From positions 124,001 through 188,000 of the forward strand of contig JALMLS010000343.1 in assembly GCA_038496445.1 (NCBI GenBank): DNA of 64,000 nt, written 5' to 3'. The notes under the pieces were generated by a model. It was not told the DNA's origin. It did no database searches and saw nothing but the letters and a program-made list of their open reading frames with translations. Below are positions 10,681 through 64,000 of the stretch, piece after piece. The DNA comes from Trichosphaerium sp. ATCC 40318. Taxonomy: Eukaryota > Protista > Tubulinea. Position 1 is the stretch's first letter. Each line of letters opens with the position of its first letter. The position numbers and the translations under genes are program-made.

Positions 10681-11166
10681 TATATACTTCTTTACACACG
10701 AGTAGATGTATTAAGGTGTGCTAGAGTCCGGATAGCGCTGTTGACTCAGTTTGAAAAGGGATTTAAGGTGTACTGTGAAATCAATAATCAATACTCTCAA
10801 TTCACGCACACCTTACTCATCCCTGCCTATCTGGAAGAGCTTGGTTGCGTAATATAAGTTTAATAAAATGAGACTCTCTGCACACCAGCTCTAGCTGCTC
10901 TCACAGTTGCTTTGAAAGACCATTGACAACTACACCAATATTCTGTAACACGTGATGCGACTAAACATAGAAAAACGTAGATGGCAGTGCCAACTTGAAG
11001 CAACGTATTAGTACGTGAAACAAATCGTAGGGTATGGCCCTCACAGGACGTAGCAAAGTTAATCAAGTCGGCAACGATTTATGATAAAGGATTTCTCAGT
11101 GAAACTTCTTGCACATCACTTAACTCTTTTAAGGTTATTACGTTCATTAAACAAATGCTCGTCACA

Positions 11167-12738
11167 ATGGCACAACAACATAAAAAACCATATGCTGCTC
11201 CTGGGTCTTACGATGCTATGTGTAAGTATTTCACAGCTGGCTCGTGTAAATATGGCTCTTCTTGCCGGTTCAAACACCCTACGACCTCAATATGCAAATA
11301 TTTTGCATCTGGTTCATGCAAATATGGAGATAGCTGTCGATTCAAGCATTCTGGAACCTCAAAACCGAAAAAAACAACAAAATTTATCGTAAAACAGACG
11401 CAACAACCTCAAAAAGTTAAAGCGGGCAATATTACAAAAAAATTACGACCGGGAAGGAAGAATCAGTTCGCTAACGCAAAAGGTATTGCAATCATCTCTT
11501 TTTGAAATCCATGAGGCAAACAAAGGAAACAGACGAACGTAGAAGAGGTTTTAAGGCCCAGAAGCTCATTACCCTTTGGAAAACCCTTGTTATTTCTTCT
11601 AACGTTCTGATACAACTTATCTTTCATCAAAATTACAACATCTAACGAATCAAGTGATTTCAGCAAAAGCAACGATTATTCCACCTGCACAACCAAAAAA
11701 ACGCAAGCTAAACGGTGATTCAAACACCAAGAACAAAAAACAAAAAGTCGGACCTACAAAATCGCGTAAATCGATATTTGAACGACTTCAAACCAACACA
11801 ACAACTACACCCACTCCCAAACCCTTCCCCAAAAAACCAACAAAACAAAAAACAACTACTCGTCCTAAAAAACCAGTACTCAAAGCAAAATTGGCTCGAC
11901 AACCGACACGGAGTTCGTCTAATAAACCAAAACGACGCGTGGACGTTTCGCAGTTAAGAGTCCAAATCAATCGAACAAACAAAACGGTACATATTTTACT
12001 ACCTCGTAGTCTTTTCTTGTTTCTTATTCTCTCTTTAGAAGGATGTGGTAAAACAAGAGCGCACTATTGTCGGTTCTACCGCACGCGCCCCTCCAAAGTC
12101 GCTTGTACAAAAGAAAAAGCAGCGAGCAACAGTACACCCAAAGGTTACTAAAACACAACAAAGACCTTCGAAACCAAAGGTAAACATTTTTTAATTCGTC
12201 AGTTACTATTTTTTTTTTGCGACTGCACTGTATCTTGTGGTTAAATGAAGGTGTTACGCACCGCAACAAGAAACCTGAGGCGTGTAAAATACCTCCTACC
12301 TCTATGGGAGGTTTGAGCCGCGTTAGACCATTGTTTTACGTTAAAATCGTTTAATATACTTTTTTCGTACAAACCACTAACTTTACTCTCTAGCGAAGGC
12401 TAAAGGTTGATACTGTTCTCAAGACAATACCTCGTCCTGCGTGGGCTAAACCAAAGATAAACCTATCGCGCGAAAGGCGACTACAAAAAGTTCAGGCTCT
12501 ACGACAAACAGAATCAATCAAAATAGAAGTCAAGAAAGAACCTATCGAAACAAGGCCTGTGCAGGTGGAAAATCCAACGCTAAAGACGCCCAAAGAGGAG
12601 CCAAAGACGGAGGAAGCAGTTCAGACGCCTATAGACATTCATAAACCTACAACAAGTGTTGGAGAATACACAGATATTTTAGATCTGGGAGAAGACAATC
12701 TTGACGGCGATGATGATGACTTCGATTTTGGGGAGTAG
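11167..12738 (+). CDS. Tandem CCCH zinc-finger protein with Lys/Pro-rich region and acidic tail (probable nuclear RNA-binding protein)
   Basis: Two C-x7-C-x5-C-x3-H fingers (CKYFTAGSCKYGSSCRFKH, CKYFASGSCKYGDSCRFKH), SIFERL motif, ends DGDDDDFDFGE*. Confidence 0.8.
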
Positions 12739-14270: not shown

Positions 14271-16823
14271 ATGCGCCACGTATTAGCGCTACTAGTGGTC
14301 TTTGTGTTACTTGACGTATCAGGCGCGTTTATGGCGTCTGAGTATGTTAACAAAAAAGAACTGCTCGATGGTGCGTATACAATACACTGGAACGTAGACG
14401 AGCGTATTGGTGTAATATACATGGCTTTGGACGTAAAAACTACCGGTTGGGTTGCTTTTGGTATTGGCGAACCTACCTCTGGAAGGTACAGCTCTTTCTT
14501 TAATTGTTTTGTACACAATTCTGAAGTGTACGCTCTAAAGAGCTAACTTTACTTTGTAATAGCATGGGTGGCTCCGACATGGTATGGGGCTATGTCAACG
14601 GTACGTCAGTTGTGCTTGTTATTTGAAAAGCTTAAATCGCCGTATTTATACTTATTTCTTATTTAGACACTACTGGAAACACAACAGTAACTGATAGCTA
14701 TTGTACAAAGGTGAAACTCCTAAACTTTTTTTTTTTCTTTTTTCGGAGCGCTTGAACTGATTCTGTTTGTGCATAGACTGGTGCTATTCCAATTCCTGAT
14801 GACATGTCTTGTAACGACTGGGCAGTCTTAAGTGGTAATCAGGTGAATGGGAGAACGATTATAGAGCTACAACGCCTACTTGACACTGGGCATAGCCAAG
14901 TACTTTTTTTTTTTGGATTTCATTGTATTTTTGTTTTGTTCTTTCCGAAAAGAGTATTCTTGTTGATTTCTCTCTAGGATAGACCTATAATGCGAGGATC
15001 TAATAGAGTAGTTATTGCTTGGGGAGACGGAGGGGATGACATATTTGGATATCACGGCACAAATAGGTGTAAGCTATAAATAAGTCGTTTTTGCTACATG
15101 GTTTATGCCCGAAAAAAATAGTCTTGACGTGTTCGCTCAATTAATTTCTTAATCTCTTTTGTAGTTGCTACTTCCATAGTTTTTTATGGAGAAGATGAAT
15201 ATTATGAGGCAACGCATCATAATTCATCAATATTTATTGGAGTTATGCCAGGTTAGATGCCATATTTCTTGATCAACAAAATCACTGTACTTACCTTTTT
15301 TTTTATTTTTAGATTTCCAACTTCCAAATCAAGTAACCACCTATGCTTGTACAGCTATTGAGATATCTGATAGTAAACCAATGCATATTATTGCGGTACA
15401 GCATTTATTTGTTTCACACGTCAATAGTTCTGCTGATTTTTTTTAATCAAAAGTACGAGCCTATCATTGACAATACAGAATTTATTCATCATATGCTTGT
15501 ACATGACTGTACAAACTCTCCTATATATGAAAACCTAGAAGGGAATATAACCACAGCATGTGCCGGTATGCCACAAGTACGTTGTCACTGTCATTCCAGA
15601 AACGCAGTAAAAGCTAATGCAAAGATTACTGTAGTTTCAAGGGTGTAAGATACTTTGGGGTTGGGCAGTAGGAAGTACTGGATTTGCTCTACCTCCTGAT
15701 ATTGGTATGCCATTAGGTAAAGATGGTGCTACGCGTATCGTTATAGAGATACACTACAACAACCCACAAAAAAAGGCAAACGAATCGGATAGGTATAGGC
15801 ATAAAATTTGCCTTTGGTTTTTCATTCGACATGGCTTACTTCTCAACCAGTTCTGGCGTAAAGATTTTCGCGACAGAACAGCTTAGACCTATAGTAGGCG
15901 GTATGATGAGTCTTGGAGACCCTCTAGTAAAAGGTGTCGATATACCAGCCCAGTCTACTGACGTACGCTATATTTGCTTATGGTTGACCGTTGGTTTATT
16001 ATTTCATAGGTCGAGCGATGGTATTCGTGTCCTAGTGAGTGCACAGAAGGGAAAGAGTGGACAGAGCAAACTATCACTGTATTTAGCTCATTTCTGCATA
16101 TGCATGAGTTTGGTAATTGTTTTATTACATCTAGTACGCCTAGCATACCCATTAACCCATACTTAGGTACTCAAATATGGACACAAATCACTCGCCCTAA
16201 TGGAACTACTTTTGAAGGCAACAGAATTGACTACTGGGATTTTGGTGTGTTTTCTTGGTGTTTTTTTTATTCTTTCTTTTTTCTGTTTTTTGCGGGCGTT
16301 GTTTTTGACTGTTGTTAGCTTTTCAACAAACTACAAGTGTAAATTATGAGATACATAAAGGAGATAGAATAAACGTGCATTGTTTGTACAACACGGCAGG
16401 TAGAACACAAGAAGTGAAGATGGGCATTGGATCAGAGCAAGAGATGTGTCAAGTATATGCATTGTACTATCCAGTAATACCTACCGTCCGCTTGTGCGGT
16501 GGAGGCGGATCAGGTGGAGTACTATGTGGTAGACTGTTGAACGTACCAAATAGATTCCCACTCAGTACGACACATTTGCTATTTTTCTGTTTGCACTTAA
16601 CTCTTTTTTCTAACTTTGTTATTGTAGTACCTGATCCAGAGTCGTTTCGTATTAAGAAATTTGAGCAGCCACCTGATGTTTGCAATGTACCTTCAAGCAA
16701 TACTAGGTAAGTTGTTGTTGAGAGATGTATTAATGAAGTTAACTTATACTTTTTCGCAATAGGAGGGTTGCTTTTATGTTTCATTTAATCTGTTTGACAA
16801 TCATTATCATGTTGGTTGTTTAA
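14271..16823 (+). CDS. DOMON + copper type II ascorbate-dependent monooxygenase (DBH/MOXD1-like); signal peptide and hydrophobic C-terminus
   Basis: DOMON GWVAFG..SMGGSD. Copper ligands IHHMLV, EIHYNNP, LHMHEFG and EQEMC. Ends in a hydrophobic tail. Confidence 0.9.
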
Positions 16824-17015: not shown

Positions 17016-17732
17016 TTAAAGGCTGTTTGTATTTCGTTCCCACACTGCTTTTACACCTTCAACTGTCACTTGTTTGCAACCACTTACATCTATCGTATGC
17101 ACAGTTCCAAGAGAAGCAATACCACTGTCTGTGATATTCGGGCAGTAACTCAAATCAATTTGATGAACACCAGCAAGATAACCAAGTCCAACATCAGTGA
17201 TATCTGTACATTCACTCAAGTCAATACTATGCACTCCGGCAAGAGCTTTCAATCCCTTATCTGTAACACGTGTACCTTCTAAATCAATAACTTGCACTCC
17301 AGATAATAGAGATATACCAGCGTCTGTAATCAAAGTACAACCATTCAAATAGATTTGTTTGGCTTTCCGTAGTTGATACAAATGTTTATCAGTAAGAACA
17401 TCACGTAAATCATGGCAATCAATAGCTGTATGTCTTAGCATACCACTGTAGTGTTTTATAATGTATAAGTCTTCGATATCCTTTGGGAAAGCTCTCTCGT
17501 ATCCTACACGATGGTGGACGACCTTAGAGAGGCGAAGGCATGTTTGTGCAACTGCGTATCTTGAGCGTCTCAAAAAGCTAACAATCAACGATAACACGTC
17601 AACAGGCAATCTAAGAAGACAACGTGGTTTCTTCCTCTTTTTGTTTCTTACCCTAAGGCAAGTTACACGTTTAGTTTTCTTCGTAGAACCCAAAAAGCGT
17701 TCTCAATAGTACCTTTGGAGCCTTTTGGACAT
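17016..17732 (-). CDS. F-box/leucine-rich repeat protein
   Basis: LLRLPVDVLSLIVSF F-box followed by repeats of GVHxIDLSxCxxITDxG. One 5' intron (MSKRLQR|VRNKK). Confidence 0.85.
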
Positions 17733-25371: not shown

Positions 25372-27148
25372 TTAATAAAAGTCGGTTGCGCGGTTGTTCC
25401 TGACAAATGAAGCACGTCTGTGATTGATACCAACCCAGTAGAATTTCTTCCAGTAGCCCATAGGTACAAGGGAGAAAATCCAAAGTGCGGTACCACGCAA
25501 GCAAGCCTTCTTACGCCAATCATGGAAAGGATCAGCAGTCCATCTCAAGAAACTAAAACAGTCAGTCGCCAACGCCAAAAGAAAACAAAAAAAAAAAAGA
25601 AACATTTGAACCCAAACGTACGTAGAAACATCCTTGGCCATTTGAGAAATGGAAGCTGGTGTACCATCTTCGTATTCGACCATATCAGCACGAAGTGGTG
25701 GTGGCATAGAGAGCCATCCACCTTCGAAGTACATGTTGTAATATAGTTTTGGAGGAACTAGAAAGCAAGCATTAACAAAAAGGTTGACCAAAAAAAAAAT
25801 CGGTTAGTTATCACGTACCATCCTCGTAGAGTGGAGGAGGAACATATCCAGTGAGTACACCAAAGATGTAGTTCTCTTGTGGAGGATGCGTCAAAGCATA
25901 GTACGACAAATCAGGTGGCAAAGCACCGCCGTTCATGTAACGCGCCTGAAGCGAGAGTTAAAAAAAAAGGTGATCCCAGAATATGCGTGTAAAAAAAAAC
26001 CCAAACGATTTTACGAGGTTTACGTTTTTCGATTCAAAACAAAAAAAAGGTCATAAATAAATAATAGTTATATATACCACAAGGAATAGACGCTACACGG
26101 CTATGATAGAACCGCGAGACACCTATTTTCCTAAGAGGCGTAGTTTCTTTCCGGCGACACGGCGGTGCACTGCTCTCGACCCAGCAGCACCCAGGAAGTC
26201 ACCGGTACGTAGCTACAAGGTAAAAAAAAGAATTTGGAAAAAAAGACCAAACGTCAAAATTAAGCAAGTGTAGTGGTAAAAGTAGATGTACCTCTTTCTC
26301 ATTGGCGTATGGTCTAGGGATAGGATCCTTACGTGTAGCTGTTCTCTCAAACATTTCACCTTCATCATCAGGACCATCCATAACTTCGAATTCCTTGGCC
26401 TAGACGAGGATGAACAAGAGCTCGCTCAAATCAAAATGGAACTCAAAAAAAAAATGTTGTAGGTGTGTTTGACGGCGAGATTTGTATCGTCAAAACGCTA
26501 ACGCACCATTTGTGTTACTTCAGATTGAGTGTAAGACGAATCTACAAGATGTCGCCAGTATACGTGTTTAATTGGGTGACAAGCGTTTGTTACTTCCATG
26601 TATACCTGGTACGCGAAATAAGCGATTGTTTTTGTGGTTTATTGGGACGCGTTGATTGGTTTCGTCTTTTCGAGCGTAAAAATACTTACTTGGAAGCCAC
26701 GACGTAAGCTAAAGTGATCTAGAGCTTGGTAGTAACCATTGTGTGGGAATGGGTAATTTGGAGGCTCTACTTCTTCTTCAATAAGAGTGGCTTTAGCCTA
26801 GTAGATCACTAAGAGATCGCGTATGCGGTTTACGAAAGCGTACTGGGTCTTTAGTTGCGGACCAAAATGCGAAAGTGGTTCCCACAATGGCAGAGGCAGC
26901 GAGCCAATAGCGTGAAATGGACCTCTCCAAGCTAGCTTGTGCCATGCCCTACCCCTTGCATGTTAATTTTTCTTATTCTTACGACACTAGAACCACAGCA
27001 TTTCGTATGCCAATACGTGTGTTTTAATAGAAACACCGTAAAGACGTGAAGAAAAACGTACAAGGGATCGTGAAGCTTTTGACTGTGCGGAGCGTTGATA
27101 GCTTGTAACTGCATGTTGCGCAAACTTTGAGGTACCGCGACTGAACAT
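25372..27148 (-). CDS. CYC1: Mitochondrial cytochrome c1 (complex III) with atypical TNACH haem motif
   Basis: Presequence MFSRGTSKFAQHAV..., then LDHFSLRRGFQ|VYMEVTNACH, DGPDDEGEMFER, NGGALPPDLS, distal Met in [30 protein letters not shown], and a C-terminal TM segment. A 5'-UTR intron spans about 27149-27345. Confidence 0.95.
26070..26207 (-). ncRNA. Candidate intronic box H/ACA snoRNA/scaRNA in CYC1
   Basis: GC-rich island in a ~345-nt intron. Hairpin CCGGUGAC...GUCGCCGG with internal pocket, hinge AAAGAA (ANANNA), second hairpin, terminal AUA box. G-U pairs fit the minus strand. Confidence 0.6.
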
Positions 27149-27541
27149 CTAGGATACTTTCAGCACGAAATAAACACAACAGGGAGATCGAAACTGATTT
27201 GCCAAAGAGTAGAAGAAAGAATATTGAGAAAGTGAAAGCAGAAGCTTATTGAGTGTTTGTGGAAACAAAATACACTGAGAGCCGCTTGTCTTGTTTTCTT
27301 TTAATTTATGTGTGTAAATTAGCGCAAGTGTAGGATGAAACTCACCTTGAGGCGGCACTTCTTTGTTTCGTTCTCTGGTCTACTTAACAAAAAAAAATAC
27401 GCTAACTTAAGTCAAAAATGAGTTGTTACGTTGCTGTGGTTGTACAACCCTAAATAACGCTACAAACCACTACTAATCATACTGCGGTCACATTACATTC
27501 AGATCCGATGGTGTAAGTTTTTACTGACATTAAAAATGCTT

Positions 27542-54817: not shown

Positions 54818-55510
54818 TTAAAAATACAAGTTTGCTTCATTTTTTAGTATGTAGTCTGCCATACCCTGTCCTATCCATCTGTTCTTAACCATCTCGTTTA
54901 ATAGTGTCTTTTTAGATGTAGTACTGCTTGCTGAGTGAATGACTTTAAAAGATTCACGTATTTTTGTAGATGAGATATCTGCTAGTTCCTCTTCTACTAA
55001 GAACACGCGTTGTTGCTGTTTTTTTCGCGTTTTACGCGTTTTGGCACTGTTGTTACCAAATTCTTGTTTTAATCTTTCTGTGTCTCCCTTTCGTGCTATC
55101 ATTACTGAGTAAAACGCTGAAGAGTTCCTGGCCCTTGATGGGTTGGCACGATCTCCGCCCGTTACGATTACTTTGTTTAATTCACCATGTTCGCTTTTTA
55201 ACTCATCTGCGTACTGACTGAGGCATGCTTTTGCACATCCGAAGGTATTTTCGCAAGGCAGTATCCATTCCGCTTCCTCGTTAACCAACAATCGTATTAA
55301 CGCCAGTCTATGCTTTTTGGGCATAGCCAAGGCACCTAGCTTCTTTTTGACGTATCCATTCGGTGCTGCAGCCAAAAACCCGTGCAAAACGCAGCCTTCG
55401 CCAAATTCAACCTCCAGAGCCTTCTTTGCTGCCTCTAAAGCGCGCAAATGACATAAATGTACGGGATTAAACGCACCTCCAATACACAATATAAATTTGG
55501 TCTCAGCCAT
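54818..55510 (-). CDS. Nucleotidyltransferase (NMNAT/NadD-like, HxGH superfamily), intronless
   Basis: GGAFNPVHLCH, HRLAL, VTGGD, ISSTKIR, terminal YILKN..LY. Confidence 0.8.
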   Translation of the reverse strand: MAETKFILCIGGAFNPVHLCHLRALEAAKKALEVEFGEGCVLHGFLAAAPNGYVKKKLGALAMPKKHRLALIRLLVNEEAEWILPCENTFGCAKACLSQYADELKSEHGELNKVIVTGGDRANPSRARNSSAFYSVMIARKGDTERLKQEFGNNSAKTRKTRKKQQQRVFLVEEELADISSTKIRESFKVIHSASSTTSKKTLLNEMVKNRWIGQGMADYILKNEANLYF

Positions 55511-58609: not shown

Positions 58610-59371
58610 TTAAGCATCGTACTGGGGACCTTGATATGTCCACCAAAAGTATGGACCACCAAATGTTTGTGTCCAGTAATGATTAAACTTCTTCTGTCCG
58701 TCGTCGTTTTGAGAATAATAATACCCAATCCCAACGTCATAAAAGTAAGGACTAAGCATGTTCCTTAGATGTCCGCGGCTACCTAAAAGCCTTGTAACAG
58801 CAGTAATAGGATCAGATATACCTACAGCAATATTCTCTCCAGTATGATGGTACTTTACAGTGTACCCTGCGTTATCTATTCTCTTACGAGAAGCAACACC
58901 ATCAGGTGTCAAATGTGATACATAATCTCTTGTTACCATATCTACTGAATGTAGTAAAGCAGCTATAACGAGTTCTCTGTTTAAATAAAAAGGTCTCAGC
59001 TTACGCTTTTTCCTTTCTATATTTATAGCGTTTAAGTGTAATACAGTCATGTTGCAATGATCACGTTTAGAAGACTCAACATGAGACAAAGCGTCATTTG
59101 TTTTTTCTTCTTGTTGTTCGGCATATGGTTTAATAACTCCTTTCTCCCATGCTTTATGTGCTTGTAGGTCATCACCAAATAGTCCGTTTCTTCGATAACC
59201 TTTATCGCTGTCTATATCATGCTTAATACCGTCGTATAGGTTTCGGTAGTACGTCAGCGTGTTGTTGACAATGTCTACTGCTTCTTCGCATATGTCTAGG
59301 GCTGTTTTTGCTTTAACTGTAACGATTATACAAACGAGTATTGTTGTTGTTAAAAAATAACCCAGACGCAT
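58610..59371 (-). CDS. Secreted CAP/SCP-domain protein (bacterial YkwD-like type), intronless
   Basis: Signal peptide, INIER, AALLHSVDM..YVSH.TPDG, GENIA, SRGHLRNML, VGIG..YWTQTFG. Confidence 0.88.
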   Translation of the reverse strand: MRLGYFLTTTILVCIIVTVKAKTALDICEEAVDIVNNTLTYYRNLYDGIKHDIDSDKGYRRNGLFGDDLQAHKAWEKGVIKPYAEQQEEKTNDALSHVESSKRDHCNMTVLHLNAINIERKKRKLRPFYLNRELVIAALLHSVDMVTRDYVSHLTPDGVASRKRIDNAGYTVKYHHTGENIAVGISDPITAVTRLLGSRGHLRNMLSPYFYDVGIGYYYSQNDDGQKKFNHYWTQTFGGPYFWWTYQGPQYDA

Positions 59372-63174: not shown

Positions 63175-64000
63175 TTATATTTCAGCTATTAAATACAGTA
63201 TCATTCTACCCGACACCCTATGTTTCTTCCCTTTTGAGTCAGTATCACACAACCTTGTAGTGATCTGAAGAGAATCGCTGTGAGTCTTAAAAGCACCTAG
63301 AATAGCCAAAGCACGTGCTTCAATATGAACACTACCCATAAAATCATCTGAACCGATTTTGTCTTTATCAAATATTTGTATCACTAATTTATCCTTTCCA
63401 CTAACATTAAACTCAACAGAACTTAACTCTTGTTCCTTCCACATAGGACTTGTCTCTTTTTTTTGAACACTAGACTTAAACAGAATCTCATTTTCCTTTA
63501 AAACTAGCAAGTATGGATCGCTTGTACCACCTATGTCCTTAGCAGCTAAATCATAGCAACAAATTCTTTCCATTTTGATCTTCATAACTGTATCACGAAG
63601 ACTCTCATATTCCTCTTTTGATTCGTCCGATAAACAACTACCATCAATCTAAAGAAGTCAAGTTAGCACTGAGAAAGACATAAACTGAAGTCGTTTACCT
63701 TGAAAGGACAAAGAAACTCTTTGTTTGCAACGAGATCAAGAGACCTCTCACACTCGCTTACTAATTGGAGGTCTTGAAGCTTCTTGGAGCGTATCTCATC
63801 TGCAGTGAGTACTTTAAGCTTTTGCTTGTTCCCTGCAGCTCTCAAGATGTTAACAATAGTTGAATCAAGAGTTTTATCTATGTTCAGAGCTTGGAGAGGT
63901 TCAGATTCAGCAAGAAACTCGTCCATCCCATCAAACAACTTTTTTACATCATAAGATGAATACATACGCAAGAAATTCTTAGCTGCTTTGCTAATACCAT
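63175..64000 (-). CDS. C-terminal part of a C2-domain protein; 5' end outside the window
   Basis: DLAAKDIGGTSDPY, SPMW, IFDKDKIGSDDFMG, with the Ca-binding Asp residues present. Confidence 0.88.

Follow-up and report, generated by a model that had tools for sequence, protein, structure and literature searches.

Single-thioether attachment of haem in mitochondrial cytochromes has been called unique to the Euglenozoa in the 2021 KCCS paper, where it is also referred to as a mystery of almost 50 years (PMC8262978), in agreement with the original prediction for this locus, which had taken the Euglenozoa as the known natural exception. Cytochrome c1 from this group carries a conserved FAPCH motif (PMC8262978), in which the first (proximal) cysteine is replaced while the second cysteine and the histidine are kept, and KCCS has been described on the euglenozoan side in kinetoplastids only. 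A further reference system is provided by engineered AXXCH (C15A-type) variants of cytochrome c, in which a single cysteine beside the histidine suffices for attachment by HCCS, and whose pyridine haemochrome is shifted to the red (PMC4158909). In vitro, ordinary HCCS is able to mature AXXCH cytochrome c, the yeast enzyme accepts AXXCH but not CXXAH, and an upstream Tyr/Phe has a role in HCCS recognition (PMC4158909). Moreover, AXXCH variants still bind HCCS (PMC11727520), whereas no detectable maturation of single-cysteine apocytochromes by E. coli Ccm is given for a study as cited in PMC4158909. Maturation of the AXXCH variants shows that an ordinary System III enzyme can carry out single-cysteine chemistry.

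The locus described here lies in a 64-kb stretch of DNA that was analysed as a whole, hereafter the window. Three-frame translation and inspection of splice sites resolved a CYC1 gene on the minus strand (25372-27148) with eight coding exons, which join into an open frame of 951 nt and 316 codons. Exon 1 (27062..27148) contains the ATG and the putative N-terminal targeting part of the presequence, which is basic (six K/R and one D/E in the first 40 residues), and exon 2 (26844..26948) encodes the first of two hydrophobic segments of the protein (residues 43-61), which would fit the sorting part of a bipartite mitochondrial presequence. The predicted mature domain begins in exon 3 (26690..26797), which ends with the conserved SLRRGFQ, and is followed by the haem-binding exon 4 (26507..26605), which reads VYMEVTNACHP at its start, and by exon 5 (26292..26399), identified by its match to PF02167 and by spliced contigs. 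Exon 6 (25819..25945), which ends in phase 1, encodes the haem-pocket segment NGGALPPDLS. The distal ligand Met229 is found in exon 7 (25622..25757; codon 25705-25707, in SMPPPL), and the stretch formed by exons 7 and 8 aligns with solved c1 chains, placing Met229 on bovine Met160. Exon 8 (25372..25552) contributes the C-terminal membrane anchor, corresponding to the second hydrophobic segment (residues 272-290), and the TAA stop. The presequence, PDLS segment, distal methionine and membrane anchor, all of which had been predicted to be intact, are thus present in the 316-residue protein. All seven coding introns are of the GT..AG type, as is an additional leader intron, which brings the total to eight.

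The haem motif occupies positions 26576..26590 of the minus strand, where the codons ACA AAC GCT TGT CAC specify T-N-A-C-H, that is, Thr106 (26588-26590), Cys109 (26579-26581) and His110 (26576-26578), with Asn and Ala between Thr and Cys. The joint of exons 3 and 4 reads LRRGFQ|VYMEVTNACHP, and exon 4 aligns end to end and gap-free with the solved c1 chains from fission yeast, Candida, budding yeast and mammals (e.g., VYREVCSACHS); in the alignment to bovine c1, Thr106 corresponds to Cys37, Cys109 to Cys40 and His110 to His41. The Thr106 codon differs from TGT/TGC at all three codon positions. These observations bear out the original prediction in its reading of the spliced gene, in the gap-free replacement of the first cysteine by threonine, and in its argument that a codon three substitutions away from cysteine makes a base error unlikely, the codon being verified and cDNA agreeing with it. 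In place of the two-cysteine CxxCH that defines the haem site of cytochrome c1, genomic DNA and three cDNA data sets alike show TNACH. No alternative frame encoding CxxCH was detected in the gene region, and an alternative CxxCH exon was rejected for that reason. A substitute cysteine further upstream was also rejected: the only cysteines of the whole protein are C109 and C274, so that no substitute CXnCH motif is possible.

The transcription of the gene was evaluated by comparison with four runs from four studies (X1, X2, X9 and X12). All seven predicted joints are confirmed by spliced contigs of X1, X2 and X9 (three studies, three organism labels), at depths of 7.9, 456 and 157, respectively. 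Exon 4 shows no difference from the window in any of the three, codon 106 being read as ACA (Thr) in the transcript contigs, and the single difference listed for X1 elsewhere is synonymous. Since spliced cDNA of three studies matches exon 4, an assembly or base error and a silent pseudogene are both ruled out. Nuclear RNA editing of codon 106 was rejected as well, as cDNA equals DNA. The earlier impression that the gene is functional therefore stands in that the gene is intact, spliced, expressed and constrained, while the one-thioether haem itself is predicted from sequence and known chemistry.

Several features of the transcript lie outside the coding exons. The leader intron (27149-27345) is a 197-nt GT..AG intron that ends directly before the ATG and is spliced out in run X1, where the loose end of the contig at 27150 matches window positions 27348-27365; a partial 5' UTR exon (27346..27363, minus strand) is joined through this intron to the ATG exon. 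Because the X1 leader intron runs up to the ATG, the locus itself encodes the 5' end of the mRNA, which is joined by cis-splicing. The X2 contig, on the other hand, is colinear with the genome into the leader intron, through at least 27200, which points to alternative leaders or start sites. Intron 5 (25946-26291), at 346 nt, is by far the longest intron of CYC1, and its core (26060-26215) is a GC-rich stretch of approximately 150 nt, for which two sense-strand hairpins are predicted (-53.1 kcal/mol, z = -2.1). A separate 225-nt contig covers 25983-26200 in run X1, and a comparison of the GC-rich stretch with Rfam gave no match at E <= 1; the stretch could represent an intron-borne small RNA, or simply a retained intron. 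In addition, intron 7 (25553-25621; 69 nt) is in frame and free of stops, and a 139-codon genomic open reading frame (25372-25791) reads through exons 7 and 8 across it. Retention of this intron would add 23 residues just before the FLRW segment.

We then focused on the membership of the protein in the c1 family and on its conservation. The PF02167 profile matches exons 4-8 colinearly over profile positions 21-217; exons 4-7 alone score 28.9-61.5 bits, above the gathering cut-off of 22.8, and exon 8 scores just under it (19.0). Comparison with database c1 sequences by blastp gave E-values down to 1e-83, and the closest of these is at most 48% identical to the window protein. The protein agrees with canonical c1 (PF02167) in domain order, in the RRGFQVY helix, in the His/Met ligands, in the PDLS segment and in the C-terminal anchor, and departs from it (bovine Cys37/Cys40/His41/Met160) by the Thr in place of Cys37 and by an unusually large divergence. 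For a position-by-position analysis, a set of 117 full-length c1 sequences was used, comprising fungi, animals, plants, stramenopiles, a chlorarachniophyte, holozoans and many unnamed sources. The column of residue 106 holds Cys in all 117, and the axial-ligand columns (His110 and Met229) are conserved in 117 out of 117 and retained in the window c1. When columns at least 93% conserved in this set were considered (68 columns), the window c1 was found to keep 61 of them, including RRG, Y102, C109, H110, the PDLS block and M229. The seven deviating columns are C106T, P153T, L199V, G209Y, I227L, G274C and K300N, G209 being otherwise invariant. In a maximum-likelihood tree of c1, the window sequence sits on an end branch of 2.25 substitutions per site (median, 0.36). 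Given the 61 columns kept and the length of this end branch, the window c1 is constrained but fast-evolving.

Based on these results, we consider it probable that the window gene is the working nuclear CYC1 of the organism, whose product holds its haem by one thioether and is matured by an HCCS-type synthase. A thioether cannot be formed by threonine, so haem attachment is predicted to occur through Cys109 only. With Thr at position 106, only Cys109 could add to a haem vinyl group, and the iron would be ligated as usual by His110 and Met229; a single thioether would thus secure the haem, in the topology of euglenozoan c1 (FAPCH) and of engineered AXXCH cytochrome c. We infer such a single-thioether haem from the primary structure combined with known chemistry. 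Maturation would depend on System III, through a synthase of the HCCS type, and not on System I, since AXXCH is accepted by HCCS, while no maturation of single-cysteine variants was detected for E. coli Ccm. In this respect, RRGFQVY, the stretch recognised by HCCS, is preserved, and Tyr102 precedes position 106 by four residues, the spacing seen in other c1. The synthase could be specially adapted, but need not be, as ordinary HCCS matures AXXCH cytochrome c. Finally, a codon three substitutions away from cysteine in an otherwise constrained gene suggests that the cysteine may have been lost long ago, and that the protein has since been kept without it.

It could be argued that a normal CxxCH-bearing CYC1 does the main work in this organism, and that the TNACH gene is a divergent paralogue, either relaxed, specialised or condition-dependent. 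In run X1, a very large assembly, a second c1-like transcript of divergent sequence is indeed represented by short pieces, which align to window positions 25513-25549 and 26890-26945 and read AQNKTSRSLG where the window has AQSKASRSLG, and AQMAYDISN where the window has SQMAKDVST. Its depth is approximately 2.6-4.4, compared with 7.9 for the main contig (roughly one third to one half), and the very long branch of the window c1 would also fit relaxed constraint after duplication. However, the second transcript is aberrant at the near-invariant positions K253 and V255 (SQMAKDVS segment) and is thus not canonical-looking, and X2 and X9 lack it, the deeply covered TNACH transcript being the only c1 contig there. 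Moreover, the second transcript could correspond to a paralogue or to a related strain or species, and the latter may be represented in an assembly of that size. The window c1, for its part, retains most of the highly conserved columns and both axial ligands. Altogether, we regard a division of labour between two copies as unlikely. On the question of a second CYC1, raised together with the original prediction, the TNACH copy is clearly not silent, but pieces of a second c1-like transcript do occur in X1.

A less probable explanation, which we consider rather doubtful, is that Thr106 is a young or strain-limited variant of the cultured or sequenced lineage, tolerated but not a trait of the lineage as a whole, and that relatives, perhaps including the source of X12, keep the cysteine. 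X12 represents a variant approximately 98% identical to the window gene, with four listed differences, of which two are synonymous and two fall in one codon and together give T153V. Its exon-4 piece has three differences at positions that are not among the listed sites; codon 106 falls in a terminal part of this piece (12-14 nt from its end) in which sites apparently go unlisted, and a change between ACA and TGY also takes three substitutions. In addition, no close relative was present in the searched collections to show that the threonine is conserved. Nevertheless, three differences in exon 4 are unremarkable, as the other exons of X12 differ by 2 to 7 positions each, the distance of three substitutions from a cysteine codon argues for age, and the identical sequence occurs in three studies under three organism labels.

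It is also conceivable, but very improbable in our view, that the protein is a decaying or haem-less c1, in which covalent haem has been lost or is being lost, e.g., in the course of a shift away from the classical respiratory chain. Decay would be in line with the very long branch and with substitutions at seven columns of high conservation, among which G209 is otherwise invariant, but the frame is intact over eight exons, the transcript contigs are deep, and His110, Met229, Cys109, PDLS and RRGFQVY are all kept. Furthermore, the listed difference in X1 and those in X12 outside residue 153 are synonymous, T153V being the remaining change in X12. Lastly, no point was found in favour of an assembly or base-calling artefact, or of a gene brought in by a euglenozoan contaminant or endosymbiont, and these are extremely improbable, as exon 4 is identical in three independent cDNA data sets, GC content is uniform (37-40%) over the 64-kb window, the gene has eight canonical GT..AG cis-introns and a genome-encoded leader that is cis-spliced rather than trans-spliced, and the protein combines TNACH, not FAPCH, with a classical bipartite presequence.

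When the preferred reading, a working CYC1 with a single-thioether haem, is set against the described systems, the window c1 resembles that of Euglenozoa (trypanosomatids and Euglena) in the replacement of the first cysteine, in the retention of the second cysteine and the histidine, and in concerning the same subunit of complex III. In contrast to euglenozoan c1, the first-cysteine position holds Thr instead of Phe, and the motif is devoid of an internal Pro, which comes after the His instead, so that the sequence is TNACH and does not conform to FAPCH. The window protein also differs in its classical bipartite presequence, and the gene in being dense in GT..AG introns. As for the engineered AXXCH cytochromes c, these are laboratory variants of a soluble protein, obtained at reduced yield, whereas the window encodes a natural, membrane-anchored c1, known from DNA and mRNA. 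A search of the literature for 'TXXCH' returned no paper, and no report of a single-cysteine c1 outside Euglenozoa was found in the literature searched on c1, HCCS, Heterolobosea and Rhizaria; a previously documented TxxCH c1, which would have spoken against the novelty of the original prediction, was hence not encountered in this literature. What would be new here is the lineage and the replacing residue, while the phenomenon itself is known, and it is for DNA and mRNA that the case is established.

Regarding the origin of this condition, the dense GT..AG introns, the cis-spliced leader, the TNACH motif and the classical presequence argue against Euglenozoa proper. The original prediction had judged an intron-dense genome of this kind not to look euglenozoan, which fits these features of the window, but the c1 tree gives no reliable placement. 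In this tree, which contained neither amoebozoan nor discobid sequences, the window c1 pairs weakly (83/86) with that of the foraminifer Nonionella stella; as both branches are long, this pairing was not relied on as a placement. We lean modestly towards a second, independent natural origin of a single-thioether mitochondrial cytochrome, fixed in a non-euglenozoan amoeboid lineage and matured by an ordinary HCCS or by a co-adapted one dedicated to c1. An independent origin depends on placing the organism, which the c1 tree cannot do because of the long end branch of the window sequence. Within Discoba, Heterolobosea form the sister group of Euglenozoa, and should the organism turn out to be a heterolobosean, its position outside Euglenozoa would not be a distant one, and the claim of an independent origin would need rethinking. 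In the heterolobosean amoeba BB2, to which published mitochondrial G-insertion editing is confined, and in Pharyngomonas, ccmC and ccmF are lacking and HCCS is expressed (PMC5421314).

Searches for relatives of the window c1 in public data were also performed. A representative library of 1.84 billion sequences, queried with exon 6, returned only generic c1, at most 48% identical and all with CxxCH. A set of 5.8 billion proteins was searched with profiles that combined a foraminiferan c1 backbone with the window exons, once over full-length proteins and once over fragments of 62-196 aa, and no close kin of the window c1 was listed at either length. Since the window protein would score 338 and 222 bits against these profiles, the organism and its close kin are absent from this set in those lengths. 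A degenerate DNA pattern for VYxEVxNACH gave six matches in metagenome contigs, each attributable to chance, five of them being genes for ribosomal protein L31 from bacteria and the sixth (L001) an unassigned frame in which a stop follows the His. Look-ups of the exact products of two open reading frames of the window returned no record. A similar picture emerged for a single-exon open reading frame of the window (54821-55510, minus strand; 230 aa) resembling cytidylyltransferases/NMNAT, for which only three proteins among the 5.8 billion pass E <= 1e-5, the best match being 44% identical (an MMETSP transcript) and uninformative as to lineage; these matches show that the lineage is poorly sampled in public protein data. 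Other exons in the window belong to neighbouring genes, and encode a PARP catalytic domain (1545-2195), tandem CCCH zinc fingers (11155-11502), the C-terminal domain of a copper type II monooxygenase (16312-16707), an F-box plus LRR (17019-17693), a CAP/cysteine-rich secretory domain (58613-59371) and a C2 domain (63178-63585). None of these domains has a bearing on haem attachment.

The preferred reading makes concrete predictions, namely an alpha-band at 553 nm, a corresponding mass of the haem peptide, and an effect of a T106C back-mutation. If true, the window c1 would represent a second natural case of single-thioether haem, with another replacing residue and in another cellular background, and a comparison with the euglenozoan one would become possible. 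One could then look for accompanying changes in c1, cytochrome c and the synthase, and ask whether a single bond alters redox potential, assembly or stability. In case the lineage is a deep heterolobosean, the gene could instead represent the euglenozoan condition of Discicristata at an early stage. A second natural case would also mean that HCCS-type enzymes tolerate a single-cysteine substrate in nature, beyond co-expression in E. coli.
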